In this document: positions 7,780 to 41,373 of the stretch, in pieces
Layout: the number at the start of each line of letters is the position of its first letter
Numbering within the stretch: the first letter of the stretch is position 1
Assembly: GCA_020536535.1 (NCBI GenBank)
Contig: JAHLWZ010000906.1
Coordinates: 1 to 51,978 of the forward strand
DNA length: 51,978 nucleotides
Origin: Pelomyxa schiedti
Taxonomy: Eukaryota > Protista > Evosea
Reading direction: 5' to 3'
Notes under the pieces: model-generated
Seen by the model: the letters and a program-made list of their open reading frames with translations, nothing else
What the model was told of the DNA's origin: nothing
Database searches by the model: none
Translations under genes and position numbers: made by a program

Positions 7780-8240
7780 TTGGACACGATGATGATGGCC
7801 AGCACCAACAACACGGCTACACCCGGCGGCGGTGGTGGCGCGGGGCGGCCGACGCGGGGCCGCTCCTCCTCCTCCGCCGCCGCGAACAACGTGATCGCGG
7901 CGCCCCTCGACGTAAGCGACGACGAGGCCGACGACTACGGCGACGACGACGACGAAGCGTTCCAGGCCCAGCTCGCCAACGTGCTCCGCCAGCAACAGCA
8001 ACAACAGCAGCAGCAGCAACAGCACACGACGACGCCGTCTCGGCTACCAAAAATTACGTCGCCGACGTCATCGCACACCGGCGCGGCGGCTACGGCTACG
8101 GCGACAGCGACGGGGACGGCTGCGCGTAACGCGGCTGTTGGGGGATATTCGCCATTGAGCAGCCCCTTCCCCTCATGCTGCGGCGGCGGCGACCGTAACA
8201 TAACCACCAACACAACAACGGCAGCAACGGCGGCAGCAGC

Positions 8241-8302
<62 letters not shown>

Positions 8303-10442
8303 ATAGAAATGGTATCGGTGGCGGTGGTGGGGACACAGCTGCTAGTGCTAGTGTGAGGGCTCTGGCTTCCCCGTCATCGCCGGGGCTCGTGCCTCTGGAT
8401 TACACCACGCAGTATGCCTCTCATATAATATATCTACAATCAAACCCGGCTCAACCAACATTGGTGACTGCTTCTCACATTTTTTTTTTTTTTTTAATTA
8501 TTCCAGCCGCACACCTGGAGGTATCATTGGAAATATTCATGGGTCATTTTTGGACACCTGGGAACCTCATTCACCACCGCAAAATCAAGGTGCTCCATGA
8601 ATCACCTCTCATTCTCCTTCTTGATCCCCCTCCTCTGAAATCTTGATTTGGCATCTCCAACCCAAAAACACAGAATGCAATGAAGAAACTGCGCAATGGA
8701 ACTGGGAATCAACACAACTTGTCAAGTTTATACGCAAATATGAAGTCATTCGTGAAGACACTGTGCAATATGAAGACGAGTGGGAGAAACAAGTGAGGGA
8801 TTGTGCATATGATGCCATAGGAAAGCAGAGTTGTTTGGACTTTTCACCACTGCCATCTGAAGTGGTTGCTAGTGAACAGCAAGCAAATGCCATTTTCTCT
8901 GCTGCTTTAGAGTTAGTGACTCGGCTCGGCATATTAGTCCTGGGTGCATTTTCCCCGCAAGGATGTGGTTATGGCAGCGGCAAAGTAGTGCCAGTGACCA
9001 GAAATGACATTATGTTGAGTCTAAACAAGTCACCTGGAAGTAAACATGAAGTGGTTTTTGGCAGTGGCGATCAGATGTGCACGGTGAGAGGACGTAATGT
9101 CGGTGACGCAATTCCACCAGTTGTGTGTGGTGGCCTGAGTGGAGTACTGATTGCTGAAGGATGGGCAGAGTGTGTGACACAATCAATTGCACAAGAACCC
9201 TCAGTTGATATAGTATCAACATGGGGGATGGGCCATGTCAGAGGGTTAGAAGTGAAGCCAGGCTCGGCAACAGAAGTCATGGGAGTGAGAGAAGAAATTA
9301 GTACTATGAGGTCTTTTTTTTTTCCCTTACGATTTTACTAATGATTTTTAAGGCGCGTATTGCGGAAAGTGAAAAGACCAGGACTAGGCGTTATTGGTGG
9401 GCATACTGGTTCTACCGAATTAGGAGATGCCGTTTGTGTATGTGGAGATGTAGTGTATCGCCCAGGATGCACTGTTGGTGTTTCCACTTCACCACAGTAT
9501 TGTGGTGGGGGTTTGCTTCACCCTCAGGATGCACATACGATCATGCTTTACCCACTCATCCTGGAACAAGCCCAGCTTACACGTGCTGCAAATGCTTTGG
9601 GCAGTGGTGTTTTGAATGGCTGTGTTTCCTCTGTCCGTGTTAGAAATACCGAGGGAACCACCTGGAAAGGTGTTGTATGTGATGCAGTGTGTCTCGCTGC
9701 CTCGTGTATGGTGGCCAGCTTTGCGCTAGATGCAGATTACCATGTTCTACACCTTGACAAAGGCACTTCCCCATCTGCGTTGTGGATAATGAGTGCCGTT
9801 AGGTACCGATTAATGTTTTCAATTACTACGCACTAATGAATTCGCAGCCAAGCATTCGCCCGTCAGTCACATTGCGTAGTATTTGCCGATGTCTTTACAA
9901 TCAGTGGATCAGGGACAAGTACCATGTTGTACGAAGTGGCAGCAGCGGCACTTACATTGAGTATCTCCGGCGCCCACCTTCAAGGAGTTGTGAGCCCTAA
10001 CTCTTCCACTCCGACTTCCGCACGCCCGCAAGTTACCTCAAACACAAACACATCCGCATCCGCAGCAGCCACCGCCAACACAACCGCATCATCCACTGAA
10101 TCACCGGAAAACAGACCCGAAGCAGTTCCGCATATCAGCGGGCTTGAAGTGAGACTTTTGGCTGAAGTGGGACAGGCAGCCTGCACACAGCAACTCACGC
10201 CGGCCGAGGCAAATTCTATTATAGGAGGAGTAATGCGGCTCTATGAACACATTCTTGCCGGGAACCCAGGCCACTATGCAGTTGGCAGCGAGGAAAGTGA
10301 ATGGGAAAGGGAGAACTATGCAGGGAAGGCTATTTGGGAAACCTACAACCTCAAAACAATGACGCCGGCACCTTGGTGGCAAGGAATCTATGATACCGTC
10401 AAAGATGAACTCAGAAAACTAGGACTCCACGCTCTAAATTAA
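7780..10442 (+). CDS. mtmB-like: Monomethylamine:corrinoid methyltransferase (MtmB)-like protein, non-pyrrolysine, with a low-complexity N-terminal extension
   Basis: Exons 7780-8411, 8507-8589, 8674-9310, 9353-9437, 9498-9802, 9848-10442 join in frame (2337 nt, 778 aa). The translation is colinear with Methanosarcina MtmB as I recall it: EDEWE~QDDWD; VFGSGDQMCTVRGRNVGDAIPPVVCGGLSG~VLGTGRDAVNVRKRSVGDKAKPIVQGGPTG; KRPGLGVIG~GRPGMGV(O)G; DAHTI~DSHEV; MLYEVAAAALTLSISGAHLQGV~CLLEASAQSITDTASGREILSGV; SGLEVRLLAEVGQA~TGMEARMMGEVARA; AGKAIWETYNLKTMTP...IYDTVKDELRKLGL~AGKTFQECYDVKTVTP...VYDGARKKLEDLGL. Confidence 0.9.
8242..8298 (+). repeat. (AGT)19 coding microsatellite (poly-Ser); a poly-Gln CAA/CAG run lies at ~7989-8022
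   Basis: Perfect AGT x19 inside exon 1 of the mtmB-like gene. Confidence 0.95.
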
Positions 10443-10666
10443 ATTGAACCCTATGCCAACAAAAGCAAATCCAACTAAAGCAAAGCAAACCACTATGTGA
10501 ATGTTTCCCTCATTCACAACAAATTCAAAACAACTCAACTGCACCAACCCATCACCCAACACCAAAAAGAAAACCATCTTCACCTGTGATGGTATCAACA
10601 TTTCTCCATCAGGAATCAATCAATCAATCAACATTCTTAGCGTTGCTACGGTACGAAACGCAACTG

Positions 10667-12188
10667 ATGATGAAAATTGCGCTGTTTGTGGCTCTAGTGA
10701 CACTTTGTCTGGTGGATGGCCTCGCCGTTTTTGAATTGACACATAGCGAGGGCTATGAGATGGGCCTGGAATTCGGAGCCGCGTTTGCACCTGTTTTTAA
10801 GAACTTCCTTATGGTATTTGGTGATTGTGAACACAGTGTCATAATTTCTGACCTTGAGCGGCTTTGTTGGGGGATATAAAAAAGAATACTAACTCCTGTG
10901 ATATCAATTTTGATTCTAATCACACTCATAGCACGACCTGGAAGTTCTTGCTCTTATTCAGCGTTACAACACTGACCCTGAATTTGCTTCCCTGATTGAC
11001 AGTATAATGGCTACCCAAAAACAGTTCTACCCTGTGACCTACGAAGAACTGGAGGGTATTGCTGATGGATTAGGTGTTCCATTCGAGGAGGTGGCCATTG
11101 TGAATACAGTTGGAGACCTTGTAAACTACTGGGACAGCGGTTCTGCACACAGACACCGCGGAAAAGGCTGCTCTGATGCTACTTCACAGTACCGTATGTG
11201 ACCGTGTAGATTCGCAAGCTCTTATTTTTTCCCAAGAAGGTGAGAGTAGTGCATGGGTTCATGGGCATAACGAGGATTGGAACTCTCAAGTATGGAATTG
11301 CTGTCATATTCCTTCTAACAATCTAATTTAAGGTTGCCAAATTGACTGCCCTTATTATAACTCCGGAATGGACAAGCTACTGCTATCCAGGGGAACTCCC
11401 TGGAACAACTTTCTCTTGGAACAAGCATGGCATCATTATGTCCCTCGACTTGATCTATCCCCTCATTGACACCTATAATTCTGGGGTGGGGTGCTTGATT
11501 GTTGGAGAAGGTGAATTGATACTCAATAGGCTACTATGGGATTTGTGATGCGAGAGGTGTTAAAAAGCACATCCCTAGACCAAGCCATCAGCCGGGCAAC
11601 TCAATACAACTCGTTTTATGGGTTCAATGCTGTCATCTCTTCCCTATGTGACAAAAGAACCGCCATTGTTGAAGCAATTGTTGACAAGGCAGCAGTTGTA
11701 TCTCTAGCGTAACCTTCTCCTTTCACGGCACAATAATACTAATATTACGATAGACAACCCACGGCAGTAAATGCAAGTTACGCCCACTTCAATCTTGTTG
11801 AGTACCTTCGAGCAGATCAAGAAGATGATCAGTACATTGCCTTAAAGCAAAGCTGTTTCAACGAAACCAAGTATTCCCCCCAAAAGAACAACTCCAATTC
11901 CAGCAGCAGTTTAACTCAACTCCGCATTATAGACCGCATACATATGACCAGATACTTGCATTCCTCGGCTCCTCCGCACCCACTTGCCCAGTGTGGGCTA
12001 CCCTTCTGGGTGACCAGACCATGCATTCACTGACAACTGACCTCACTTCTTGCCTGTACTCCTCGTCAGCTGAAGCCCATCCCACAGAAACCACCCAACA
12101 GTGCAAACCCACTCTCTTCATCTGGGATTCCCCACAGCCCTCTGAGCCCCTAATGTCCATCACCTACAATTACACTTGTAGTGCTTAA
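10667..12188 (+). CDS. Secreted peptidase C45 family Ntn-hydrolase (acyl-CoA:6-APA acyltransferase / Tan-like), multi-exon
   Basis: Signal peptide MMKIALFVALVTLCLVDG; YEELEGIADGLGVPFEEV; KG-CS nucleophile Cys; VHGHNEDW; YPGELPGTTFSWNKHGI. The last exon ends at the TAA at 12186-12188. Confidence 0.85.
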
Positions 12189-12351: not shown

Positions 12352-15300
12352 CTAGTGTTTCACATCCATGTCCACGTATGAGCTTGTGTTCTTCTTCCTC
12401 CTGGCCTCTGCTTGTTTAATCCTGAACTGTCTGATGGCCAAGAAACCACCGGCGCAGCCACCAACGAGAACAACGCAGCCTCCTCCGGCGCATACAACGA
12501 TGATCCACCAGTTGGACTTCTGGCACCCAGAGCCGGTGGCTCCTATCTTGCAGTTACACTTGCCGTTGTCCTGGCACTTTCCGGAGTTGCTGCAGCTGTA
12601 TGGGCACAGTCCTTGGGGATTTGTGTGAGTCTTGGATAGCGTGGTAGTGGGATAAATACTTTGTGAGCAGTTGACACCGCCCCACTCGTCTATTGGGCTA
12701 CAAGTACACTTGCCATTGAATGGATTGCATGTTCCATGTTTCGAGCAGTTCAGAGGGCAAGATTCTGGCAGAGGTAAGAAAAAAAAAAGAAAGTTGTTGA
12801 GGAAGGGCAGATACTGAAGTAGCAATCAGGCGGTAGGTAGTACGCATCACACGTGCAAACACCTGTTCTGTTGTTGCATTTGCCGTGCCCTCTGCAATTA
12901 CTTGGGCACTTCACTGTACATAAGTTACCAAATTAATGTTAATGGTACGGGCATACCGTAACTGCAGTCTGTCCCATAGAACGGGTACTTGCACAAGCAT
13001 TCACCCTTCTGTGTGTTACAGAGGCCGGCAGTGGCATTCGTGCAATTCTTAGGGCAAGCGACTTGGTTGTTCAGTTAGGGCAGAGTGGCAGGCAAGAGTA
13101 AACTTACAGTAGGGTACTTCACATGCATCCCCTGAATAGTGATCATCGCAGTCACAAGTACCCGTGGTATTGTCGCACTTTCCGTGAGAAGAGCAAGGAG
13201 TCTTGCCTTGGCACTATTTTGTTGTCTCAGCTCTTATAGAGATACACTTTTAGTTTTACCTGTTTGTATTTGCAAGTGTCGCCATAATATCCTCCTTGGC
13301 ACACACATTTGCCAGTTCTACTCCCAGTTAAACATATTTCTACAAAGGAAAAAGATACGTAGTGTCACAACTTCCATGCACACAAGCGGGACAGCTGAAG
13401 TTGGCTATCTGGCAACCCTTTCCAGTGTAGTTGGTTGTGCACTTGCAATTTCCTGTAAACCTGGGAAACACGAGTGAGATGGGAACGGCAGTTCTGAAGT
13501 GCAAACTTGTCACACGTTCCATGGGGCCAAGAGCAATTCAGTGTGCAAGAGGCTGCGGCAGTGTAAATGTAAATCAAAGGAATTTGTTTACCCACCATAG
13601 AGACATTGCGGTAAGAGCCAAGGGGAGAAACAAGCACACTGGCCAACCGTGGAATCACAGTGTCCATGTGTACCAGTACAGTTATTCGGGCAGAGGTCTA
13701 GAAATTGATTAAAATGCTGAAACAAGAAAAGGGAAACTCCCTACAGTTTGGAGCTTCACATGCAGTTCCCGTGTAATTGGCGGTACAAGTGCAGGCACCG
13801 GTAGTGGAATTGCAAGTACCACGACTGGAACAGGGGGTCAGGCCCGGACACTACAGAGGGTTAATGGCTTAAAATTCATAAAAAAAAAATACAAACCTGC
13901 ATGAGGTTGCAAGTATCACCATAGTAACCACCATAGCACACACATTTTCCCGTACTAAGGTAAAATTTTACAAAAGAAAAGATAGATAAAAACCCACGTT
14001 ACATCACAGTTTCCGTGCTCACAGGGAGGACTGCAGGTAAAGTTGGCGATTTGACAACCTTTTCCTGCATATGTTGACAGGCACTTGCAGACTCCAGTTG
14101 TCCTAAAAAAAAGTTATAAGTCTGAGAGGGAAGCCGTGGGTGGAAAGCTACTGGTCACAAGTTCCGTGTGGATAGGAACAATTCAATGTGCAAGTTGCTT
14201 GGTTGGGGTAAGAAAGAAGGCAGAATGGATAGGAAAATACCAAGTTTACAGTCGGGGAGCTGCCAAGGCGAGTAGCACGTGCAATTTCCAGTTGTAGGGT
14301 CACAGTGTCCGTGAGCCCCAGTGCAGTTATTGAGACAGGGACCTGATCAAGTAAGTAAGGGGTAACAATAGAAATTCCGTACGTATGGGCTCCAAGCACG
14401 AAAGACCGTCATAATATTCGGCGCAATGACATAAACCTGTTGTCTGCACATGGATTGGTACGGTATAATGAGGGAAGAAAGTCTTACTGTGTTGCAGACT
14501 CCGTGTAGGTCACACTTATCTGGGCAGTACTTGTACTGACATTTGTCGCCATAATACCCATAGTAGCAATAGCATTTGCCTGTGTAGTTGTCAAGTTACC
14601 GGAACGGTGACTTGAAATTACCTTGAAGTGTGTTGCAATAACCATTGCCACTGCAATTGAGGTCACTGTAGAGAAAGTTAGGAGAAAAGGAAAGCCAGCT
14701 TAAAAAACGCACAGGCATGAGTAGTACGGGGTACTGCAAGTTACATCATAAGGGTCGGTGTAATTGGTGTCGCAAGTACAGTCTCCAGTGAGGTAATCGC
14801 ACGTGCCGTGGCCAGAGCAGTTGTTGGGGCATAACACTGCAGAAAGTGAGAACCGATTTTCTAACTTGAGCCACTCGTACTGTTTCTACAGTCCGTGCCA
14901 AAGTAACCGACGTAGCAAGTACAATCTCCCGTTGTGTGATTGCATAGCCCATTTCCGTTGCACCCATTTTCGCGAGACGGCGGGCACATGGCAGAAAATA
15001 CTTCACAACCCTACACAAGCCAATAAGAACAAGGGGAAAATGAGTAGAGGATGTTAACTGTTCCTATCCAGTCTTGGTCGCAAACGCAGGAACCCCTGGA
15101 AAGTAGTTGGGAAAGGAAAAGAAAGGGAAAACAAAGGGATAGTACGATGCGTTATTGCATGCTCCGTGACCCGAACAGTTCAGTGAGCACAATTTATACT
15201 GGCAAGAATCACCATAGTAGGGATTTGTGCAAATACAAGACCCGACACTGGTATCACACAAACCTCTCACACTCGAAGTACAGAAATCGTGTGAGGCACA

Positions 15301-18300
15301 GAGATTGACGTAGCAATCTGGGGGTTCCCATCCAGAATCGCAGGTGCAAACTCCACTAACAACATTGCAAGAGCCATGGTGTGAGCAATTCTCCAGGCAG
15401 TACTCTGAAGAGAGGTGAAAAAAAAACCACAGAAAAGTGTACATACTGTACTGACAGTTATCGCCATAGAAAGAGCCATAGCAAGTGCAGTTTCCAGTTG
15501 TCGTGTCACACCTACCAAGGTAAGAAAGAACCCAAGAAAGAGATAACTGACCGGCCATTTGGAGTATTGCAAGTCCCAGCACACGTTTTGTTGGGAATTG
15601 TGCAAGAAGTTCCAGCCCACCCTAGTGCACACCATCAGGGGAAAACATAAAAAGGGAAGAAAAAAGTACCAGCATCGCAGATGCACGTTCCGTTGACACA
15701 GTCACCTGTGAGCCCAGAGTTGCAGTCCTCCGGGCACAACTGAATGGCACACAGATCTGTCCCGTTGTTTGCCCACGGTGAGTAGCATACGCAAGTCCCT
15801 GTACGAGTGTCGCAGTAGCCATGGTTGCAGGAAGAGGGGCAGGCAACTGGTTTATTGTTAATTGGCAAGCACAGGAAAGCAAGGGATGCGTACTGTACAA
15901 GAACTGACAGTCGACAGAGGTGTTGTAAGCTGCCCAGCACGCACATACACCAGTTGCAGTATTGCAATCGCCGTGACCCCAGCAGTCGTTAGGGCAACGA
16001 GCAGCACTACATACATCGTCAACCACCCATGGATAATTGCACATGCATTTGCCAGTATTTGGATTGCAGTAGCCGTTACCAGAGCATACGGGGGTTCCAG
16101 GACAGTAGAATTGTTGGTACTGGCACATGTAACCAGTGTAATAAGCGGTACCATTATCGGCACACTCACAAACTCCTTTGGTTGTGTTGCAAACACCTTG
16201 AGGATAGCTGCACTCGGGTGTCCCGGGGCAGACATAGACGGAACAATCAGAACCCTAAGGAGAAAATCAACCACAGGGAAGAGGAGGGTACAAATAAGGC
16301 TACCACAAGGCCAGAGCGACATGAGCAGTTTCCAGAAGAATAATCACAGTCACCATGAGAAGAACCTGAACAGTTGTTCGGGCAGTCGAAGTGTGGAGTG
16401 CTACAATCTGACCCGCGATATGTGCTGGTGCAAATACAGGTGCTGCTTGAGGTGTTGCATGTACCACCATGGAGGCAAGAAGGGTCGCAGATAACCGAAC
16501 TACAATCGGAGCCGCCATACTTGAGGCCCATATAGGTGAAGCAAGTACAAACACCGGTGGCTTGGTCACATTGTCCTTGGTTGGCATTCGTGCAGTCCCC
16601 AGGGCAGGCCTTCACAGGGGTATTGCAGCTGTCGCCAATCCAGCCAGAGTCACATTTGCATTTGCCAGTTGTGCCGTTGCAAACACCATGCTTGTTACAG
16701 TACGGAATGTTTTGTGGGGGGCAGGTTTTGTTTGAGCAATCGCTTCCCCAGTAACCGAGGTAGCAGGAACAGACACCAGTGAAGATATCGCATTGGCCAT
16801 GGCTAGTGTTGGTGAGCGTAGAAAAGAGACCATCCCTTATACACACCCGGAACAGTTCTTTGGGCAATCAATAAGAGCAGCACTGCAGGACTTTCCAAAG
16901 TATGGGGACCAACATTTGCACGTTCCTGTGGTATAGTTGCAATCACCACGACCGTTACAATTGGCAGGGCAAGAGAGCTGGTGGCAATCAGGGCCTAACG
17001 GATTGTGAGGAGACGCCAAACGGGATCCTGTAAAAACATACCTCCGCGACTGCCATTGCAGCGACAAACTCCAGAAAGACCAGCACAAACACCGTAGGGG
17101 GACACGCAAGTTGCAGGGCAGGGGTAGTAGTACTTGAAATCGAGGCTGTTGGAGGACACGACGGTGTTGTTACTGTAGGCCCCAATCCACATCAGCTTCA
17201 GAGGAACAATTCCGTAACCGTGGGCTGGAATCTCGAAGGTGAGCAGCGAATCAGTGAGGGATGTCGGCGCGACCAAACCAACACCACTCACAAACACATA
17301 GATCCCCGTGCAACTATGAAGGCCAGTAGCGTTGATTGTGGCTGTTGGATGGGTCGTGAAGGGATTGTTCAGATTATAGCTGTTGGGAGTGACAGAGAAC
17401 ATGGTTACAGTCTCTACACTTGTGTGAGTGAAGGGGGTGGCGAAACAATTTTCTACACACCACAGGCGATTCCTTGTACAACAGTGACGACGTCGTTTAT
17501 GGGGCAGAAAAATACGCTGCCTGTAACATCAACAGTAAACGTAAGAGAAGAAGAACGCATGAACGGCGGAACTTTGCAGGTAAAATAGCTCGATGTGAAA
17601 TTACTGTGGGGAAGAAGATTAGAGGAGCGAGAAACAGAAGGAAATGACAATTGAATCATATTAGTATTGACAGTTGTATCTCTGTTCGGCATCTGCCCGG
17701 TGAAGTCGTTGCCAGAAAGGTCACTTGCAACGATCAGATACAAAGAAAAAAACATGTTTACATACACATAAGAAATCTTGCTATTAACCAAGGCATAAGA
17801 AAGAGATCCAGATAGCTGGTTGTAGCTTAAATCCCTGTGAAACCATTAAACGAAGAAAAAGGAATTAAAGAAAAATACAGGTATTTTATGGAAGTGCTGG
17901 CAGAAATGGAGGCTGGAATGGAACCGGTCAGAACATTGTTTTGTGCATATCTGACAATGGAGTTAAAAAAAAGAGAAACAGGAAAAAGCTTCTAGTTACA
18001 AGTATGTAAGCGAAGTCATGGCAGAGAAAATATCCGGAATAGTGCCAGTAATTTTGTTGTCTTGGAGATAAAGTTTGCTTACCACAGAGAGTTTTCCAAT
18101 GGTGGTAGGTATGTTGGTCAGGCTATTACTTTGCATTAAACTGCGTAGAAATTAGTGGAAACAAAAAATCACTCAATCTAACATTGTTACTGCCGAAGTC
18201 AAATAGCCAATGTCAATGGGGATAGACCCCGAAAGAGAGTTGTGATCTAACATTCTTGTGGAGGAAGTAAGTAGAAGAAAGGAAAACGAATCCCTACAGT

Positions 18301-27303: not shown

Positions 27304-30300
27304 ATGAGCAAGGCTGGTGTGGGTACGTTGTTGCTCACGGTTCAGTCCGCTTGGGATCTCAAAGTCAGCGGTATCGTTTTATGTTATTGGGTTTTCTTTT
27401 TTTTTTTTTTTTCCCCCTCGCGTGTCTGTGTGCAATACGAAGAGCAGTGCTTTTAATTTATTGGAAAAATGCTACCAGAAAATGTATTTTTTGTTACGTA
27501 TCGTGTTTGGTGCTTTTTCTCGTTTCTCGTGTCTAATGCCCTCGCATTTTTTCTTTATTTTGTATGCAAACGTACCATAAAGCTGTGGTATTACATTTCA
27601 ATGAAAATAGAAACATTTAGCAATCCAACAATGACCCCAACACATCGAACTTTTTTTTTAACAAAACCCAAAAACAGATGCCGTGGGCAGCTCAGACCCC
27701 TATGTTGTCATTATTTATACGGACACAGCAGGGAAAAAAATAAAGTTAAAGACCCGTGTAATTCCCAAAACTGTTACCCCAGTTTGGAATCAGGATTTTG
27801 AAATCGTTGTTGGGCAGCCTCCAAAGAACCCCAAAAAACCACACAAGCAGTATCCCCGCATCAAGTTTCGTGTCCAAGACAGTGATGTATTTTTTGATGA
27901 TACAATTGGCACTGTTGCATTTGATCCCACACTAACACTTCCCCATGGGGGAGTTCCTGTTGATTTGACTCTGGCCTTGTCACTTAAAAGTGATCCAAAA
28001 TTGGGCAGTATCATTGTTGCTTCTACACCAGCCTCCACAGCTACTTCTGTGGAAACTCCACCCCCACCACCAACACCTACAGCAGCCACTGACAATGTTG
28101 TCCTCCCTTCTGCAACAACTGAAGGTTCAACAGAAGCCGCAACGTCAACATCACCTGCAGAACCAACTTCCCCTGCGGCAATAACAGAAACAACAGCCAC
28201 AGCTACTTCCACAGGCACAACTACTGACACATCTGCAACGGCCACAGCCACAGCCACTACCACATCATCTACCACAGCAACCACCACGGCAACCGCCACA
28301 GCCACAGCCACAGCAACAGTAACAGCAACTACAGTGGCGTCATCAACTACTACTACAGCATCAACACCTACAGAAACCAGCACAACAAGCACCGCAGTTA
28401 GACCTGCAGCTCCTGCAAACTCGCGAGGTGTTTTGAAAATCAAGGCTGTCTTTATACCAGCACATCCTGTAAATCAATTTGCTTCAGTGTGCCAGTGGGA
28501 GGTATCACTCCTGACCTCTGACAAGGACAATGCAGGCATGTCGGACGAAACTGCCACTCTCCAATTAATAGGAACTAGTGCTGGAGGCGGTGTGGCCTCT
28601 CCCCCAATGAGGGTTAGTGCTAGTCACGGGTTTCCAAGGAACTCAACAAAGAGCTGGAGAATATATGCCCGTGATGTTGGGGCAATTGCAAGAGTTAGGG
28701 TATGCCGAGATGTTGCAAGTGCAACAGGAGGCAGCTGGATGATAGGTACTGTAACCCTGGCACCTGTCAGTGCATCAGGAATGACTGGAAATGCCATAGC
28801 ATTCATTGTAAAAGACGGTTCCATTATGGAGACCTCAGGCTCCTTTGTTGATGCAGTGCCGGCTATTGGAGGATCTTCAGCAGGACCTACAAATGCAATT
28901 GTGCCCTCGGCTACTTCAGGGCTTCGTGACGTAATATACACTGTAGTTGCCAAGACAGGTGACCGAAAAGGTGCGGGTACTAATGCTCCAGTGTCGATTG
29001 TACTGATCGGGGCCCATGGCAAATCTCAGCCGCTATATCTCGATTCTGCTTCTCCCGACGCGTTTACACGCAACCATGAAGACACTTTCCGCGTAGTTTC
29101 ATGCTATGTGGGTGAAGTACAGCGCATAAGAGTGGCTTTGAAACCCACTGACCCTCCATCATCTTGGTTCTTGGAGAAGATGTGCATCTTTCCTGCCGAA
29201 GCCCGTGTGGCGACGGCGAAGAGGTGGTTCCATTGTGGTGAATGGCTTGGTGCAATAGGTGAGAAGGAGCGCGTTATCAGCGCTTCGCTGCATGAAAATG
29301 CACCTGCCACCCTCGCCCCTTCAACAAGGAGATATAAGGTGTTTGTGTTCACTGGTGATAGGAGGGGTGCTGGTACTGATGCAAACGTATTCATCCGCGT
29401 TTTTGGAGAAAAGGGGGAAAGTGGAGAAGTTCATCTGGAGGGTGCTGGAAAGACGTTTGAAAGAAAGGGAAAAGATGAGTTTGGATTTGAATCCAAAAAC
29501 TTGGGGGAACTGCAGAAAATTCTGATTGGCCACGACAACAGTGGCTTCAGCCCTGCATGGTTCCTTGATCATGTAGTGATTGGAGAAGAGGGAGTTACTG
29601 GACGAGCATGGTTATTTGCATGTGGCAGATGGTTTTCAAAGAAGGATGAAGACGGAGAAATAGAAAGAGTCATTGCTGCAGCACCAATTACTGGGGGTGT
29701 TGGAGAGTGGTGCTCCCCTCCTCTAAGGCACTATCAAATAACCACAATTACCGGAGACAGAAGAGGGGCAGGCACTGATGCCAACGTCTACATTATCTTG
29801 CATGGTGAGAAGGGTGTATCACCAAAAAGCTCTTTAGAAGGCCCTGGGAACAGATTTGAAAGGGGCAGAGCAGATGAATTCGGGATTGAATGCCCGGATT
29901 TAGGCAATTTGAAAAAGGTGACTATTGGCCATGACAATGGTGGTCTTGGACCAGCTTGGTTTTTGGATAAGGTGATAGTTCAAGGCGTTGAAGACAAAAT
30001 CATGTGGTACTTCTTGTGTGGGAAATGGCTTTCTAAACATGACGGTGATAAACGAATTGAAAGGGACCTGGAAGCCCTCCCACAAGATGGAGTGGCATCA
30101 CTGCCTCTGATGAGGTACCGTGTTACAACAGTTACTGGTGACAGGAGAGGTGCTGGCACTGATGCAAATGTTTTCATTAACATCAAAGGTGAGGAAGGAA
30201 AAGAGAGTGGAAATAAGAAGTTGGATGCTGCTGGAAACTGTTTTGAAAGGGCACAGAGTGATATCTTTGGTGTTGAATGCGAAAAATTAGGTGCTGTCAA

Positions 30301-33300
30301 GTCTATTATCATCGGTCATGATAACAGTGGATTTGGCGGAGCTTGGTATCTTGAAAAGGTATTCCACTACATTCCATTTTTATGCTTAATTTTTTTTCAC
30401 AAGGTTATTGTTGAAGAACATATCCCAAATGGACGAAAGTGGTTCTTCCTCTGTGGAGATTGGATTTCCAAAAAATCGGAAGGCGGATTACAGAGAGAAC
30501 TTACTGCCATTGCAGAAGATGGTCCAGCTTCAGCTCCGATGAGGCGATATCGTATCGAAGTTTGCACTGGAGATAGACGTGGTGCTGGAACGGACGCGAA
30601 TGTGTATGTTCAACTCCATGGGGAAAAGGGTGTCTCCAGAAAGAGTTTCCTTGATAAACCTGGAAACTGTTTTGAGCGGAATGATGTCGACGTGTTTGGC
30701 ATGGAGGAAGTGGACCTTGGACCTCTACATAAGTTGGTCATAGGTCATGATAATAGTGGATTTGGTGCTGCCTGGTTTTTGGATAAGGTTAGCTTGTTTT
30801 CTTGAGCCTTTTTTAACGATCCCTGACATACAACTAACTTACCACAAGGTAAATGTGACGGAAGAATCATCTGGAGCAACATGGCGTTTCTTCTGTGGTA
30901 AGTGGCTGTCAAAGGACTGTGACGACCACCTTATAGAGCGAATTCTTGAACCTCTTCCTGATGACGGATCTGCCTCACGATTAGCTTCTCTACCTCTGCG
31001 ACACTATCGTGTTACTGTAAAGACTGGTGACAGACGAGGTGCCGGAACTGATGCCAATGTCTTTGTTGAACTTGTTGGGGTGGAGGGAAGCAGTGGCCAA
31101 AGGAAGTTGGATGGAAGAGGCGATCCATTTGAAAGGAAAAAGGAGAGCCCCTTTGGAGTCGAGTGCCCAGACCTTGGAGATTTGAGAAAGCTTATAATTG
31201 GGCATGACAACAGTGGGTTCAGTGCTGGGTGGTTCCTTGACAAAGTTGTTGTGCGGGAAGAGGATGGTGACAATGTAGGAAGAGAAACCTATTTCCTATG
31301 TGGCAGGTGGCTTGCTGATAATGAAGACGACAAACAAACAGTTAGAGAAATCCCAGCGCGAACCAAAGATGGAATTGCTTGTGCACCACTTAAAAAATAC
31401 AGGATAACTACCGTTACAGGAGACCGACGTGGTGCAGGAACTGATGCAAATGTATATGTTGTGCTACATGGTACTCAGGGGAATTCAGCTCAACAATTTC
31501 TAGATGGACCAGGAAATAGATTTGAGCGCGGAAAGTCTGACGTTTTCTCCTTGGAATGCGTTGATTTGGGTGATATTACAAGCTTGACTATAGGCCATGA
31601 TAACTTTGGTGTTGGTGCCGCCTGGTTCTTGGACAAAGTTATTGTGCAAGAAGAAGCCACTGACCCCTCTACTCCCGCTCCACCTCCTCTCTTTTTCCTA
31701 TGCCGCAGATGGCTAGCCAAGGATGAGGAGGATGGTTTGATTGAGAGAAAGCTTGATGCCATCCGAGAAGATGGCGGCCCGTCTCACCCCTGGGCACACT
31801 ACATTGTAACAACTGTAACCGGGGATCGAAGGGGTGCCGGAACTGATGCCAATGTATATGTTGACATAAAAGGAGCAGATGGAAGCACAGGGCCGCGGAA
31901 ACTTGAAGGAAGTGGAAACTGTTTTGAGCGAAAGAGTGCAGACAAATTCGGGATTGAGTGTGCTTCCATAGGGGATTTGCAGTCACTTGATGTTTGGCAT
32001 GACGGGTCTGGATTTGGTTCTGCATGGTTCTTGGATAAGGTACTGACACTTTCCTTCCCAGTGATTACTCTAACTCTACTAAATAGATAATTGTCGAAGA
32101 GGAATACCCGAGATGTGGCCTACGTTGGTTTTTCTTGTGTGGCCAGTGGCTGAGCAAATCTAAGGAAGAAGACGCAACAGATTCTGAGCAACCACCTTCC
32201 CTTCGAAAGACTCTAACACCTCAGTCGATAGATGGTACGAGCTGTGCACCTCTAAAGCATTACAGGGTAACAACAGTCACTGGTGATAGAAGAGGTGCTG
32301 GAACTGATGCAAACGTTTATATTACCATCTTTGGAGAAAAAGGAACTTCCCCAAAGACATTCCTCGATGGACCAGGGAATAGATTTGAAAGAAACAGAGC
32401 AGATGAATTTGGTTTGGAGACTGCGGACTTGGGAGCCTTATCCAAGATTATCATTGGGCATGACAATGGCGGTCTTGGCCCGGCATGGTTTTTGGACAAG
32501 GTGATTATTCAAGAAATGGAAACGGGAGGCATCTGGTACTTCCTATGTGGAAAGTGGCTCTCGAAACATGATGATGACAAGTTAATTGAAAGGGAGTTAC
32601 CTGCTCTGTCCAATGATGGAGTTGCATCATTACCTTTGACACGCTACAGAGTCACCACAGTTACTGGTGACAGGAGAGGTGCTGGAACTGATGCTAATAT
32701 TTTCGTGAACTTATTTAGCACTGAGGAGGGAAAGAGCAGTGGCGAAAAGAAACTTGATGCAGCAGGAAACTGTTTTGAGAGAGCACAAAGTGATGTCTTT
32801 GGAATAGAATGCGAAAAACTAGGGGATTTGAAATCTGTGATTGTTAGAAATGATAACAGTGGCCTAGGTTCTGCTTGGTTCCTGGAGAAGGTATTGGGTA
32901 CCTAATCTTCTTTTTCTTGAAGTCTCAATATGCCTACAGATTATCATTGAAGAAGATGTAGCTAATGGGAAAAAATGGTTCTTCTTATGTGGCGATTGGC
33001 TGTCTAGGGATACTGAACTACAAAGAGAGTTACCTGCTATTAGTCATGACGGGCCAGGATCTCCTCCTTTAAGGAGATATCGCATTGCAGTTCACACGGG
33101 AGATAGACGTGGTGCTGGTACTGATGCAAACGTCTATGCAATTTTACATGGTGACAGGGGTGTTTCCAAGAAATATGCTTTGGAAGGTCCAGGAAACTGC
33201 TTTGAGAGAAAGAATGTTGATATATTTGGTGTGGAGGCAGTAGATTTGGGACCTCTGAGAAAACTTGTTATTGGTCATGATGGTGCTGGCTTTGGGTCGG

Positions 33301-36300
33301 CTTGGTTCCTGGATAAGGTTTGTTCCAAAGGCCAAAACTGGGCAGAATAAAATAAAAATAGGTTGTAATCACTGAAGAAAGCTCTGGCGCCATTTGGACC
33401 TTCCTCTGTGGGAAATGGTTATCCAAGCAATGTGAAGACCACTTGCTGGAACGAGAACTTGAGCCTCTACCTGACTCTGCTGCTGATGCTCGGTCATGTC
33501 TCCCTCTGCGACGTTATCATCTCACTGTCAAGACTGGAGACAGAAGAGGTGCTGCCACAAACGCCAACGTGTTTGTGGAGCTTTGTGGTGCACTGGGTAC
33601 TAGTGGGCAAAGGCCTCTTGATGGTGCTGACGACCCATTTGCACGAGGGAAGGATAGTGAGTTTGGTATTGAATGCCCTGATGTTGGAGAGCTTCGGAAA
33701 TTAATAGTTGGGCATGATAATAGCGGCATTGGAGCTGGCTGGTTCCTTGACAAAGTGATAGTAAGAGAGGAAGATGGTGAAAGAGCAGGGAAGGAAGTTT
33801 ACTTCCTCTGTGGCAGATGGTTGGATGACAGTCAGGATGACAAACAAATCGTACGAGAATTACCCGCAAGGACACAGGATGGAGCAACTTGCGCACCTCT
33901 AAAGAGGTATAGAGTGACAACAATAACAGGGAATAGGCGCGGGGCAGGAACTGATGCCAATGTTTATGTTATTATACATGGCACTGGTGGCGATTCTTGC
34001 AAGCAAATCCTAGATGGACCTGGAAACAGATTCGAGCGTGGGAAGACGGACTTATTTGCGGTGGAGTCTGTGGATTTAGGGGAACTGAAGAGCGTTACAA
34101 TTGGACATGATGGAAGTGGGATTGGGAGTGCCTGGTTCCTTGAAAAAGTAATCGTTCAGGAGGAGTCTGTGTCAGCAGTCGACGGCTCAGTGGCAGGAAA
34201 ACCTCCAATGTTCTTCATGTGTGGGAGATGGTTAGGCTCAGATGAAGAGGATGGGGCCACTGAAAGAACCCTCACAGGTTCAAGTGAGGACGGGTGTTGC
34301 TCATCTGATTGGGTTCGTTACATCATAACTACCGTTACTGGTGACAGGAGAGGTGCTGGGACTGATGCCAACGTTTTCATAGACATACGTGGCAAGACAG
34401 CAAAAACAGGGCAGAGGAAGCTTGAGGGAAGCGGAAATTGCTTTGAAAGAAAGGCCAAAGATAACTTCTCTGTTGAGTGCTCCGACCTTGGCGAATTGGT
34501 AGACCTGGATATTTGGCATGATGACTCTGGCATCGGCGCATCCTGGTTCCTTGATAAGGTTTCCTTTTCTCCCCATGTAAAAATGTACTTACAGTTTTGC
34601 GGTAGGTAATTGTTCAAGAGGATCGTCCTACAGGGCGTCAATGGTACTTCTTATGTGGACAGTGGCTCAGTAAGGAGGTAGTCGAAGAGACAGATCACCA
34701 ACCCCCTTCTCTTAAGAGAACTCTTACTGCATCTCAATTTGATGGTGTCAGTTGTGCAGCTCTTAAGCATTACAGGGTGACTACAATTACTGGAGATAGG
34801 AGAGGAGCTGGAACCGATGCAAACGTTTATATCATTATGTTTGGTGATAAGGGTGCCTCACCAAAATCACAACTTGATGGACCAGGGAACAGGTTTGAGA
34901 GAGGCAGAGCGGACGAATTTGGACTGGAATGCATAGATTTGGGTAGTTTGACAAAGATTGTAATAGGGCATGATAACAGTGGTTTTGGTGCATCCTGGTT
35001 CCTCGACAAAGTGGTCATAAAAGAAGAGGAATCAGGTTCAACATGGTACTTCTTATGTGGAAAATGGCTTTCAAAACACGAAGAAGACAAATTGATAGAA
35101 AGAGAACTTGATGCACTTACTGCAGACGGAGTTGCGTCACTACCTTTAATGAGATACCGAGTCACAACAGTCACTGGTGACAGGAGAGGTGCTGGAACTG
35201 ATGCTAATATTTTTGTTACCCTTGTTGATGAGGAGGGAAAGAGCAGTGAGGAGAAGAAGCTTGATGCAGCAGGAAATTGTTTCGAGAGAGGAAATAGTGA
35301 TGTGTTTGGAGTAGAATGTGAAAAATTAGGGGCACTCAAGTCATTAACTGTAAGAAATGACAACAGCGGACTTGGTTCTGCTTGGTTCTTGGAGAAGGTT
35401 CTCCTCTTTCTTCAATTACTTCGTGAATAATTGCATCATAGATAATCGTTGAAGAAGATATTCCAAATGGGCATAAATGGTTCTTCTTATGTGGTGATTG
35501 GCTTTCCCGAGATACTGCACTACAACGTGAACTAGCTGCTGTAGCACAAGACGGTGTTGCTTCTGTACCTGTAAGGCGTTACCGTATAGAAGTTCAGACT
35601 GGAGATAGACGTGGTGCTGGTACTGACGCAAATGTCTATGCAATTTTGCATGGAGAAAAGGGTGTCTCTCGCAAATTCTCACTGGATGGGCCAGGGAACT
35701 CTTTTGAAAGAAGACAGGTGGCAACTTTTGGTGTTGAATCACCTGACGTAGGAGCTTTAACCAAACTTGTAATTGGACATGATGGCTCTGGAATTGGATC
35801 TGACTGGTTTTTGGAGAAGGTTTCATTTTCACCAAGTTGATTTGTTTTCAACTACTTGCACAGGTATCAGTAACTGAAGAGAGCTCAAGGGCGACATGGT
35901 ATTTCCTTTGTGGCAAGTGGTTGTCCAAAGACTCTGAAGATCACTTACTTGAGAGGGAACTTCTACCTGAACCAGATTCAGGTGCTGCTGCCAAACTAGC
36001 ATCACTTCCTTTACGCCACTACCGCATTCTTATACACACTGGAGATCGCAGAGGAGCAGGAACAGAGGCGACTGTGTTTGTAGAACTGATTGGGTCCATT
36101 GGTTCCAGTGGGCAAAGAAAGTTGGATGGAGCTGGAGATGCCTTTGCAAGGAACAAGGACAGTGTATTTGGAATCGAGTGCCCTGATGTTGGAGAGCTTA
36201 AGAAACTGATTATTGGGCATGACAATAGTGGCCTCAGTGCGGGCTGGTTCCTTGACAAAGTGGTTGTTAAGGAAGAGGATGGTGATAGAGCTGGAAAGGA

Positions 36301-39300
36301 CACGTTCTTCTTGTGTGGTAGGTGGCTTGCTGACGATGAAGATGACAAACAAATTATACGAGAACTACCAGCCAGAAACGAGGATGGAGTCTCCTGCGCT
36401 CCTCTGAAGAAATACCAAGTAACTACAGTTACTGGGAAGAGACGTGGTGCAGGAACAGATGCAAACGTTTACGTTATCATTCACGGATCACTTGGGGACT
36501 CAGCGAAGCAATTTTTGGATGGACCTGGGAACAGGTTTGAGAGAGGTCAAAGAGATGTGTTCCTGGTGGAATGTGTGGACCTGGGGGTGCTAAACAGTGT
36601 TACCATTGGTCACGATGGAAGTGGACTTGGGAGTTCATGGTTCTTAGATGAGGTTATTGTTCAAGAAGAGCTATCTGCCAAAGGGGACTCTGCTGCTGTT
36701 GCCACCCCACCCGCTCCTGTTTATTTCATGTGTGGAAGATGGTTGGCAAAAGATGAGGAAGACCACGCAATAGAGAGGACACTTACAGCGGTACTGAAGG
36801 AAGGAACTGGTCCTGGTGCCTGGGTGCGTTATATTGTAACGACCCGAACAGGGGACAGAAAGGGAGCAGGCACTGACGCCAATGTATTCGTCGATATCCG
36901 TGGCGCAACTGGAAGCACGGGACAAAAGCAACTGACTGGAAAAGGAGACTGCTTCGAGCGAAAATGTGAAGCCAAGTTCGGTATTGAGTGTGAATCTTTG
37001 GGAGATCTTGTTTCCCTTGACATCTGGCATGATGGTTCTGGGTTTGGGTCAGCCTGGTTCCTTGATAAGGTATTTTCTCCGAATAAATAGGCGTTCCACT
37101 TACTGGGATAAAGGTCATCGTTGAGGAGGATGTTCCAGCAGATGGCAGAAAGTGGTTCTTCCTATGTGGGAAGTGGCTGAGCAAATCTTCCATGGATCCT
37201 TCAGATCCCTCTCCTTCAATTAGGAAAACTCTTGTACCTCAAATGCGTGATGGTGAAAGTTGTCCACCACTCAAGCGCTACAGCATTTCTGTAAAGACTG
37301 GTGATAGAAGAGGCGCTGGAACTGACGCCAATGTTTACATCATTCTACATGGAGAGAAGGGAATTTCTGCCAAGAATTTCCTTACAGGGCCAGGAAACAA
37401 GTTTGAGAGGGGTAGAACTGACGAGTTCGGCATGGAATGTGTGGATTTGGGCACTCTGACTAAGATTACAATTGGCCATGATAATAGTGGGATTGGAGCC
37501 TCATGGTACTTGGAGAAGGTGGTTGTGAAGGAAACAGAGGGAGCATCAGCCTGGTTTTTCTTGTGTGGAAAGTGGCTGTCAAAGCATCAGGATGGTGGTT
37601 TGATTGAGAGAGAGCTTCCTGCACTTTCCACTGATGGTGTTGCAGCCTTGCCTTGGGTGCAGTACAAGGTAACAACTGTGACCGGAAATAGGAAGGGTGC
37701 TGGCACTGATGCAAACGTTTTTGTGAATATCGTGGGAGAAGATGAAAAATCTACCGGGAACAAGAAACTAGAGGGTTCAGGGAACTGTTTTGAGAGAGGT
37801 CAATCAGACTCATTCAGCATCGAGTGTGAGAAACTTGGCGAGCTGAAGTCTCTCAAAATATGGCATGACAACTTTGGAATAGGAGCTGACTGGTTCCTGG
37901 AAAAGGTAATTTGTTTCTCTCTGCATTCCTCTAAATGTGCTATCAGGTGATTGTAGAAGAACTGGCCGCAGGAAAAGCTTGGTACTTCTTGTGCAACAAG
38001 TGGCTCAATAAATCCGAGGGTCTCTCTCGTGATCTGACTCCCATTGCCCACGATGTTTCTACTGATTGCCCACTTCGTCACTACCGAGTTGATGTAAAAA
38101 CGGGTGATAGGCGCGGTGCTGGGACTGATGCAGGTGTCTATGTGATTTTACATGGGCAAAAAGGAGTATCAGAGAAACACAGTCTTGACGGTGGAGCCTT
38201 TGAGCGAAACAAAGAGGACACTTTTGGGTTTGAGGAAGCAGAATTAGGTACTTTAACTAAGCTGGTCATTGGACATGATAACAGTGGATTTGGGGCTTCC
38301 TGGTTCCTCGAGAAGGTATTTTATCTTTATCACTGTTCCTCCAGTAATATGAATGAAGGTGAGGGTTGTTGAAGAAGAATCCGGCACTGTTGCGAACTTC
38401 CTGTGTGGCAAATGGCTAGCCAAAGACATGGAAGATAACCTTATTGAACGAGAACTTTTACCCAGTGCAACCGACGGGGACGCCTCTGCCCCGCTCCGCA
38501 TGTATCGCATCAATGTATTCACTGGTGATAGGCGTGGTGCGGGGACTGATGCCCGCGTATCAATAACTCTGTTTGGTGCGAGTGGGAATAGTGGAGAAAA
38601 GGTGTTGGAGGGGAAAGGTAATTTGTTTCTCTCTGCATTCCTCTAAATGTGCTATCAGGTGATTGTAGAAGAACTGGCCGCAGGAAAAGCTTGGTTTTTC
38701 TTGTGTGGAAAGTGGCTGTCAAAGCATCAGGATGGTGGTTTGATTGAGAGAGAGCTTCCTGCACTTTCCACTGATGGTGTTGCAGCCTTGCCTTGGGTGC
38801 AGTACAAGGTAACAACTGTGACCGGAAATAGGAAGGGTGCTGGCACTGATGCAAACGTTTTTGTGAATATCGTGGGAGAAGATGAAAAATCTACCGGGAA
38901 CAAGAAACTAGAGGGTTCAGGGAACTGTTTTGAGAGAGGTCAATCAGACTCATTCAGCATCGAGTGTGAGAAACTTGGCGAGCTGAAGTCTCTCAAAATA
39001 TGGCATGACAACTTTGGAATAGGAGCTGACTGGTTCCTGGAAAAGGTAATTTGTTTCTCTCTGCATTCCTCTAAATGTGCTATCAGGTGATTGTAGAAGA
39101 ACTGGCCGCAGGAAAAGCTTGGTACTTCTTGTGCAACAAGTGGCTCAATAAATCCGAGGGTCTCTCTCGTGATCTGACTCCCATTGCCCACGATGTTTCT
39201 ACTGATTGCCCACTTCGTCACTACCGAGTTGATGTAAAAACGGGTGATAGGCGCGGTGCTGGGACTGATGCAGGTGTCTATGTGATTTTACATGGGCAAA

Positions 39301-41373
39301 AAGGAGTATCAGAGAAACACAGTCTTGACGGTGGAGCCTTTGAGCGAAACAAAGAGGACACTTTTGGGTTTGAGGAAGCAGAATTAGGTCCTTTAACTAA
39401 GCTGGTCATTGGGCATGATAACAGTGGATTTGGGGCTTCCTGGTTCCTCGAGAAGGTATTTTATCTTTATCGCTGTTCCTCCAGTAATATGAATGAAGGT
39501 GAGGGTTGTTGAAGAAGAATCCGGCATTGTTGCAAATTTCCTGTGTGGCAAATGGCTAGCCAAAGACATGGAAGATAACCTTATTGAAAGAGAACTTTTA
39601 CCCAGTGCAACCGACGGGGACGCCTCTGCCCCGCTCCGCATGTATCGCATCAATGTATTCACTGGTGATCGGCGTGGTGCTGGGACTGATGCCCGCGTAT
39701 CAATAACGCTGTTTGGTGCGAGTGGGAATAGTGGAGAAAAGGTGTTGGAGGGGAAAGGTAACCCATTCCAGCGCAAGTCACAAGCCAGTTTTGGGATTGA
39801 GTGCCCTGATATAGGTGACTTGCAGAAGATAACCATTGGTCATGACAATAGTGGCATCAACTCAGCTTGGTTCCTTGACAAAGTTGCTGTCAAAGAGGAG
39901 AGGAAAGGCGGCAAAGAATGGTTCTTTCTCTGTGGTAAGTGGCTTGCCAAAGGGGAAGATGATGGACTCACTACGCGCGAACTCCTTGCAAGTTCTAAAG
40001 ATGGTGTTGCTTCACTGCCAATGAAACGATACGCAATTAAAGTTCACACTGGTAATATCCGCGGCGCCGGAACTGATGCCAGGGTGTACATCACACTGAT
40101 TGGAAACAAGGGTGTATCTGAGAGACAATTCTTGGATGGCCCCTCTGGTTCTTTTGAAAAGAACAAGACAGATACATTCGGGATTGAGTCTGTGGACCTT
40201 GGTGACCTCTCCCGCGTTGTGATTGGCCATGACAACACCGGGTTTGGCGCTGCCTGGTATCTGGATAAGGTGACAGTCTCAGAGGAAGAGTCGGCTGATA
40301 ATCCCCATCCACACAAGTGGACTTTCATTTGTGGAAGATGGCTGGCTACCAATGAGGATGACCACAGAATAGAGCGAGAACTGACAGTTTCTGTAGGCCC
40401 ACCACCTCCAGGTTCTGCTGGGTGGTGCCGGTACATACTGGAATTCTACACTTCAAAACTGAGGGGTGCCGGAACTGATTCAAATGTCTTTGTGATTATA
40501 TTCGGTGCCAACTCTAACACCGGAAGGCACGTAATGCCTGCTCGGCGCAAGTCCTTTGAGAAAGGAAGTGTGGATACTTTTGGAATTGAGGCACCTGATG
40601 TTGGTCCAGTAACTAAAATTACTGTCGGGCACGACGGGAAGGGATTCAATTCAGGTACTTTTACCTAACTACACTATACAAAACACAACAATTATAAATT
40701 CACATTCTTTCCAGGTTGGCACCTTGAGAAGGTAATTATTTCTAAGGAAGGAGCACCTGACAAGTGGTTCTTCACAGTCAATAAGTGGTTCGATGTCTCT
40801 GAGGGTGACCACCTCACAGTCCGTGACGTCATCGCCTCCACAGCCGATGGAACTCCCACAATTCCGATGGTCCCCTACAAGATCGTGGTTGTTACCGGCA
40901 CAGAAAAGCACGCCGGGACAAATGCCAACGTATGTTGCGAGTTGATTTCCGCTACGGGCGTCACAAGCGGAGCACTACCGCTTCAGAATAAACGAGGATT
41001 CAACACAGGCGAGGAAGTTGACTTTGGGTTTGAGCTCCCTCACCTCGGAGAATTGACTTCACTCAAAATATGGCATGACAACCATGTGTGCCCCTGTTCT
41101 CCGTTATTCTCTTCTTATTATTAGGAGACTAATGGCACTAAACATGCCGACACTTTCCTAATTTTTAGAATACCTTCACTAATGGTTTTCTATTTGTAGG
41201 GGCTGAGTGCCGGCTGGTACCTAGAAAGTATAACAGTGTCAACAGACACAAAGGAGTGGTTCTTCCCGTGCAACAAATGGCTTGACAAGAAAAAGATGGA
41301 TGGGGCAATATCACGTGTACTTGTACCAGGGCCCAAGCCCAATCCTCTTACTACTAGTACATCCAGAAGTTGA
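27304..41373 (+). CDS. C2 domain + Thr/Ala-rich linker + ~30 PLAT/LH2 domains (LOXHD1-like architecture)
   Basis: C2: probable first exon MSKAGVGTLLLTVQSAWDLK at 27304, then GSSDPYVVI..KTRVIPKTVTPVWNQDF..DSDVFFDDTIG. The motif Y-x5-TGDRRGAGTDANV..IGHDNSG.G..WFLDKV is seen 30 times (3 within the duplication, one truncated), plus one degenerate PLAT near 28500. Stop at 41371-41373. The 5' exon junction is uncertain, and the frame is perturbed at the duplication junction. Confidence 0.9.
37552..39761 (+). repeat. Tandem 1070-bp duplication (37552-38621 and 38692-39761) with a 70-bp templated insert at the junction
   Basis: Offset is 1140. The first ~700 bp are identical and I count 10 substitutions in the last ~370 bp. 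Insert 38622-38691 copies ~37912-37981. Confidence 0.95.

Follow-up and report, generated by a model that had tools for sequence, protein, structure and literature searches.

The MtmB family (Pfam PF05369) includes the pyrrolysine (Pyl)-dependent monomethylamine (MMA) methyltransferases, such as MtmB1 of Methanosarcina barkeri, as well as many homologues that do without Pyl. In 2026, one of the latter, MtqB of Methanococcoides methylutens Q3c, was demonstrated to act as a tetramethylammonium/choline:corrinoid methyltransferase (PMC13044021). It methylates its corrinoid protein from both tetramethylammonium and choline, and has trace activity with MMA (PMC13044021). Pyl-free MtmB homologues are numerous, with more than 1,000 coming from one query, yet a function has been assigned only for MtqB. 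In this study, we analyzed a 51,978-nucleotide stretch of DNA from Pelomyxa schiedti (contig JAHLWZ010000906.1, assembly GCA_020536535.1; hereafter the window), in which an MtmB-like gene is present once. To judge from its sequence, it belongs to the nuclear genome of an anaerobic eukaryote and is intact, spliced, and single-copy. The novelty lies in the occurrence of the MtmB family in a eukaryotic host and not in the state of the active site, which is ordinary for the family; a full-text literature search returned no paper that puts the MtmB family in a eukaryote.

The assignment to the family comes from comparisons of the individual exons. The open reading frame (ORF) at 8643-9341, which contains the exon 8674-9310, matches the Pfam model PF05369 with an E value of 3e-13 (49.8 bits, profile positions 16-182), and the last exon (9848-10442) matches it with an E value of 7.5e-6 (25.5 bits, positions 371-450), the cut-off being 25 bits. 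The former exon also matches the M. barkeri MtmB1 chains 1L2Q and 1NTH (E 6.7e-7), and the latter matches 1L2Q (E 1.8e-3). The exon lying between them (9353-9802), which carries the Pyl-site region, has no Pfam match and no PDB match by itself and is therefore, as far as these searches can tell, the most diverged portion of the protein. When this exon alone was compared by BLASTP, it matched the bacterial homologue P0179 over a segment spanning the Pyl site (E 9e-14) and the product (P0178) of a second eukaryotic gene, L002, described below (E 4e-8). Because the exon matches P0179 at this level and its flanking exons match PF05369, the alignment at the Pyl site is not a product of chance. A profile built for the family with the window pieces included matches 1L2Q at 9e-140; no NCBIfam model matches either the window pieces or the bacterial P0179. 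Taken as a whole, these matches identify the protein as a divergent member of the MtmB family.

The reading frame of the MtmB-like domain, which lies on the forward strand, is interrupted at 9341 and 9836, and the stop codons fall within short GT...AG segments. Excision of 9311-9352 (42 nt, with an in-frame TAA) and 9803-9847 (45 nt, with an in-frame stop) leaves three open stretches in a single frame. These are 8674-9310, encoding the N-terminal third of the domain, 9353-9802, which includes the stretch flagged in the first-pass annotation (9353-9660), and 9848-10442, encoding the C-terminal third and ending in a TAA stop. Both introns begin with GT, end with AG, carry the motif ACTAATGA about 13 nt upstream of the AG, and are inserted in phase 2, the first within an Arg codon and the second within a Ser codon that precedes QAF.

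Splicing of 9310 to 9353 yields EEISTMR|RVLRKVKRPGLGV-I-GGHTG, which aligns without gaps to KTETRLIKNACAMAGRPGMGV-X-GPETS in the 1L2Q chain, where X is residue 202. The stretch ...KRPGLGV-I-GGHTG of the window thus stands opposite ...AGRPGMGV-X-GPETS of the crystal structure, and the MtmB string given in the first-pass annotation proves to be right. We placed the site residues in a MAFFT alignment of 77 sequences. The identity of the Pyl202 column is fixed by genuine Pyl enzymes: P0017 and P0019, which are gene-called N-terminal pieces of such enzymes, stop immediately before it, and the locus of P0017 (L001) has a TAG at this very column, with pylD adjoining and a corrinoid protein gene downstream. 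At this column the window has ATT (Ile, 9393-9395), followed by CAT (His, 9402-9404) at the Glu205 column, ACG (Thr, 9537-9539) at the Glu229 column, where a DAHT motif takes the place of DSHE, and GTT (Val, 9624-9626) at the Glu259 column, after which comes RVRNTEGTTWKG where the family has a near-invariant GGxxGG. The four columns therefore read I/H/T/V in the window and X/E/E/E in the Pyl enzyme of L001. The Glu259 column falls within the stretch that has diverged most (VSSVRVRNTEGTTWKG), where Val is the best placement and the least certain of the four assignments. Moreover, the spliced five-exon model, whose upstream part is discussed below, encodes a product of 795 amino acids with no in-frame TAG or TGA and a single terminal TAA.

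These results agree with the first-pass annotation on all four residues, including its reservation about Val, and on the lack of an in-frame TAG. They also uphold its conclusion that the canonical Pyl-imine mechanism for MMA is ruled out, as the protein has Ile at position 202 and no carboxylates at 205, 229, and 259. The first-pass annotation assigns the three glutamates a role in activating the substrate, for which our literature searches yielded no open paper in confirmation. No tRNA was found in the window by ARAGORN.

The same alignment, which compares both Pyl and non-Pyl enzymes as the annotation had proposed, contradicts the idea that Pyl was replaced and the glutamates lost in this gene. 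In the closest bacterial clade, Leu occupies position 202 in all 28 sampled members, as it does positions 229 and 259, and Gln occupies position 205 in 26 of the 28; most of the remaining non-Pyl homologues in the 77-sequence site table likewise have Leu at 229 and 259. Set against the Leu/Leu/Leu of this clade at 202/229/259, the window has Ile/Thr/Val. As the bacterial clade and most non-Pyl homologues share it, the Pyl-free, carboxylate-free site is best regarded as a trait of the donor lineage and not as an event in the window gene. The bacterial homologue P0179 was retrieved by a search seeded with both eukaryotic sequences; one query with it returned more than 1,000 relatives sharing 64-69% identity, the names of which are mostly Anaerolineae/Chloroflexi. 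In addition, a profile search found full-length, uninterrupted homologues in Verstraetearchaeota/Methanomethylicia, Asgard groups, Anaerolineales, and others.

A HMMER search with the N-terminal domain exon against 1.84 billion cluster representatives gave 20 matches, none above 38% identity. The top match was a 125-amino-acid ORF on a 255-kb metagenome contig (L002; ENA ERZ21831265, contig ctg81561l), where we found a second spliced MtmB-like gene at 9408-11246 with very short introns of 34-39 nt. This contig also contains a long interspersed nuclear element (LINE)-type reverse transcriptase and PX, Ras, and kinase fragments. The L002 intron at 10345-10378 interrupts an Arg codon in phase 2 (ELQFLR|NAIARCDRSG) and is homologous to that of the window (EISTMR|RVLRKVKRPG), and the intron at 10769-10807 lies, also in phase 2, within the Ser codon that precedes QAF, just as the window intron 9803-9847 does. 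A further intron of the L002 gene, 9906-9943, is absent from the window gene. Two introns at identical position and phase point to a single intron-bearing ancestor of the two genes, and show that the gene has long been retained in eukaryotes. The upstream exons of the two genes share the motif NNV.xAPxDVSxDExD (11 of 16 positions identical, E 1e-4), and this common motif supports the view that the N-terminal extension belongs to the gene. In a synteny search between the window and L002, the MtmB-like gene was the only match, and two scans of JGI metagenomes with patterns specific to the eukaryotic pair found no further relatives; only these two eukaryotic copies turned up in our searches. Immediately 5' of the L002 gene and in the same orientation (L002:8600-9130) is another spliced gene, with a 2x[4Fe-4S] ferredoxin domain at its end, which has no counterpart beside the window gene.

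In a maximum-likelihood tree (LG+F+G4, 453 columns), the window and L002 proteins form a clade with an ultrafast bootstrap (UFBoot) value of 100. The tree places this pair, on long branches, as sister to, and not nested within, a bacterial clade with mostly Anaerolineae source names, again with a UFBoot value of 100. Together with the shared introns, this topology indicates one old transfer from a bacterium to a eukaryote, followed by retention. What was transferred would have been a Pyl-free MtmB homologue, whose nearest relatives among the sampled sequences come mostly from Anaerolineae (Chloroflexota). Once in the eukaryote, the gene would have acquired introns and a disordered N-terminal extension, and the same transferred gene would also have been kept by a second, distantly related eukaryote, represented by L002.

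Overall, the window and L002 proteins share 34% identity, which is unevenly distributed: among the columns that the bacterial clade conserves it reaches 53% (95/178), compared with 22% (60/270) for the variable ones. Their 22 shared derived residues include the His at the 205 column, which none of the 75 sampled prokaryotic sequences has there. Several loop motifs at the end of the barrel, namely GxGx(L/I)G, D(A/S)H, GSGxxxML(Y/F)E, and SG(A/S)HLxGV, are shared by both eukaryotes and the bacterial clade. Of 85 family-conserved columns, the window protein keeps 54 and a genuine Pyl enzyme 60. As a whole, we take the pair to represent an old eukaryotic branch of the family that has been retained twice, carries signature residues of its own, and shows erosion of the core motifs.

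The first-pass annotation had offered a new substrate, a new chemistry, or a pseudoenzyme, and had drawn its only analogy from the MttB family. An analogy to that family alone is now outdated, as MtqB is itself a non-Pyl MtmB homologue with demonstrated activity (PMC13044021), and a new substrate therefore has a direct precedent within the family. In the bacterial sister clade, the gene for P0206 begins 4 nt after that for a B12-binding_2/B12-binding protein, so that at least part of this clade is probably wired as MT1 enzymes. The genomic contexts of sister-clade genes differ (L004:1-2882, L006:6469-9377, and L009:6974-9380): one gene overlaps with the end of a hybrid histidine kinase gene, another comes after a GntR regulator and a corrinoid protein, and a third is located among glycoside phosphorylase genes. 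This may hint at multiple substrates or roles in the clade.

We favor the reading that the window gene encodes an active corrinoid-dependent methyltransferase for a substrate other than MMA, to which we give a probability of roughly 0.5. In its favor are the concentration of identity at conserved columns, the derived residues common to both eukaryotes, with His at 205 among them, the 54 of 85 family-conserved columns that are kept, and the corrinoid-protein gene next to P0206. The sequences themselves establish the homology, site residues, shared introns, phylogeny, and pattern of constraint; the catalytic activity, substrate class, and partners are predicted by analogy with MtqB and from the gene pair at P0206. 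The predicted TIM barrel would accommodate a methylated substrate that does not depend on activation by Pyl, most plausibly a quaternary or otherwise pre-activated compound of the methyl-amine type. The methyl group would be transferred by SN2 attack to the Co(I) of a separate corrinoid protein, which would then be unloaded by a second methyltransferase. The His at position 205, which is specific to the eukaryotes, may contact the substrate.

Several observations weigh against this reading. A tblastn search with two corrinoid proteins found no corrinoid-protein gene in the window or in 20 kb of L002, and some sister-clade genes likewise lack a corrinoid neighbor. The eukaryotic branches are long (0.88 and 0.75, in addition to a stem of 0.45), and 19 family-conserved columns are lost in both eukaryotic proteins. 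Both lack the second Gly of GGxxGG (99% conserved), E235 (92%), D239 (85%), and the P and H of GPxH; in addition, the first Gly of GGxxGG, invariant in the other 75 sequences, is missing from the window protein. In the window, GGxxGG has become RN..G with a 4-amino-acid insert, E235 and D239 have become P and E, and GPxH is lost to a deletion. The replacements at the lost columns differ between the window and L002, and the pattern looks like relaxed constraint on loops that Pyl and non-Pyl enzymes alike retain. It is for this reason, one not given in the first-pass annotation, that a pseudoenzyme keeps some weight. Under that alternative, the MtmB fold would be under selection while corrinoid methyl transfer has been lost, and the protein would serve in binding, scaffolding, or regulation, or carry out a different chemistry. 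The eroded residues and their unshared replacements fit it, as do the long branches, the 7-residue deletion at HPIH, the insertion of about 20 amino acids straight after the Pyl-site motif, the Pyl-site exon that finds no Pfam match by itself, and the gain of a long, disordered extension at the N terminus that contains a conserved acidic motif. However, the barrel-end loop motifs common to both eukaryotes and the bacterial clade, the His fixed three residues past the Pyl column in the eukaryotic pair alone, and the retention of 54 of 85 family-conserved columns, which is near the 60 of a real Pyl enzyme from another clade, speak against it. We hold this explanation to be less likely than an active enzyme, but a serious competitor.

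The remaining explanations carry less weight. High divergence and low-complexity insertions are what one might see in a decaying or unexpressed relic, a pseudogene that has not yet been interrupted, but the 795-codon model has no internal stop and its canonical splice sites are intact. Moreover, the gene survives in two lineages at 34% identity with preserved intron positions, and its identity to the L002 copy is concentrated at conserved columns, so that we find a relic improbable. That the protein is a true MMA methyltransferase working without Pyl is suggested only by the database name of its homologues, 'monomethylamine:corrinoid methyltransferase', and by the trace MMA activity of MtqB (PMC13044021). 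Against this, Pyl202 and all three neighboring glutamates are absent, and the literature we examined describes no Pyl-independent MMA methyltransferase of the MtmB family; we regard this idea as very improbable. Finally, as the MtmB family is otherwise known from bacteria and archaea only, prokaryotic contamination or mis-assembly had to be considered. However, the reading frame is broken by two short spliceosomal-type introns with in-frame stops, the guanine-plus-cytosine (GC) content of the gene is that of its flanks, eukaryotic genes lie on either side, and an independent eukaryotic contig has the same introns, which together make contamination next to negligible.

If the gene product is active as a methyltransferase, then substrate:corrinoid methyl transfer, which is characteristic of methanogens and acetogens, reaches eukaryotes; if it is inactive, the gene is a clean case of an old enzyme fold retained for another purpose. 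One may go further and speculate that anaerobic amoebae run their own corrinoid methyl-transfer pathway, consisting of an MtmB-like MT1, a stand-alone corrinoid protein, and an activation domain, which demethylates choline-type quaternary amines. Such a pathway might feed a B12-dependent ethanolamine ammonia-lyase, tying the one-carbon metabolism of the host to its syntrophic and methanogenic symbionts. Although we consider this broader scenario unlikely, it would, if true, represent the first case of a eukaryote operating a substrate:corrinoid methyltransferase system.

Upstream of the domain, the five-exon model has two more introns, both putative and placed from the open frame that runs through GT-AG junctions. 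The putative first coding exon (7789-8411) would supply the ATG and a low-complexity N-terminal extension rich in polyQ and polySer, and contains the motif NNVIAAPLDVSDDEAD at about 7885-7932. Its GC content is 63%, compared with 46-52% in the remaining exons, and it includes a polyQ run encoded by (CAG/CAA)n and a polySer microsatellite of 19 AGT units. It would be followed by intron 1 (8412-8506, 95 nt; GTATGC...T-run...CCAG), proposed from frame arithmetic and its GT-AG ends, a small linker exon (8507-8589), and intron 2 (8590-8673, 84 nt), which would take out an in-frame TGA at 8596-8598 while keeping the frame; all of these are on the forward strand. The intron 8412-8506 is on a weaker footing than the two downstream introns. 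An alternative start codon, the ATG at 8539, was rejected, as no available acceptor joins it to the MtmB frame. Within the Pyl-site exon, an in-frame 48-nt GT..AG segment (9450-9497) overlaps part of an insertion relative to all homologues; owing to its GC content of 52% and its lack of an ACTAAT motif, compared with 24-36% GC in the verified introns, this segment looks like coding sequence and was kept as exon. The last exon has a Ser/Thr/Asn/Ala-rich insertion of about 39 amino acids (about 10014-10130) that was seen in no homologue. It was considered as a hidden intron with a donor GTGAGC at 9990, but both candidate acceptors disrupt the frame.

The neighbors of the gene in the window encode Sel1 repeats, EGF-like repeats, and a C2 domain together with at least 17 PLAT domains. 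The latter belong to a very large gene or gene array at 27683-40668 on the forward strand, in which the C2 domain precedes at least 17 PLAT/LH2 domains that are distributed among numerous ORF pieces, an architecture similar to that of LOXHD1. The ORFs at 15064-16867 on the reverse strand contain teneurin-type and laminin-type EGF repeats.

Among the Pyl enzymes, MtmB1 of M. barkeri (1NTH, 1L2Q) is homologous to the window protein across the entire domain, and the window protein retains both the DxH motif and the GRPGxGx motif that precedes the Pyl column. However, it is about 25% identical to a Pyl-type enzyme and has Ile in place of Pyl202 and His, Thr, and Val in place of Glu205, Glu229, and Glu259. 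Also, whereas the Pyl locus L001 has an adjacent corrinoid protein gene, the window gene has none.

A closer resemblance is seen to the non-Pyl homologues of Anaerolineae/Chloroflexota, such as P0179 and P0206, which are annotated as 'monomethylamine:corrinoid methyltransferase'. Like the window protein, they match PF05369 from end to end, have a hydrophobic residue at the Pyl column, and lack Glu at 229 and 259. They also have in common with it the motifs LxRAANxL, ADYHxLH, QAFxR, YEHxx, and a C-terminal PxPxWQxIYDxVKxxLRxxGLxAL. Nevertheless, the window protein is just 31-33% identical to them, and unlike them it has introns, an N-terminal extension of about 235 amino acids, three insertions, and His instead of Gln at position 205. 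It is also without their GGxxGG, HPIH, and NE..D motifs, and the adjoining corrinoid gene of P0206 has no equivalent beside the window gene.

The non-Pyl members of the MttB superfamily (MtgB, MtcB, and others) provide a parallel only: they are related to a Pyl enzyme, do without Pyl themselves, and demethylate quaternary amines, but they are unrelated in sequence to the window protein. With MtqB, on the other hand, the likeness is one of family. In the published tree MtqB is placed near the Pyl-encoding MtmBs (PMC13044021), whereas in our tree the window protein groups with a mostly Anaerolineae clade. Yet both are non-Pyl members of the MtmB family, and MtqB demonstrates that Pyl-free members can act on quaternary amines together with a cognate corrinoid protein (PMC13044021).

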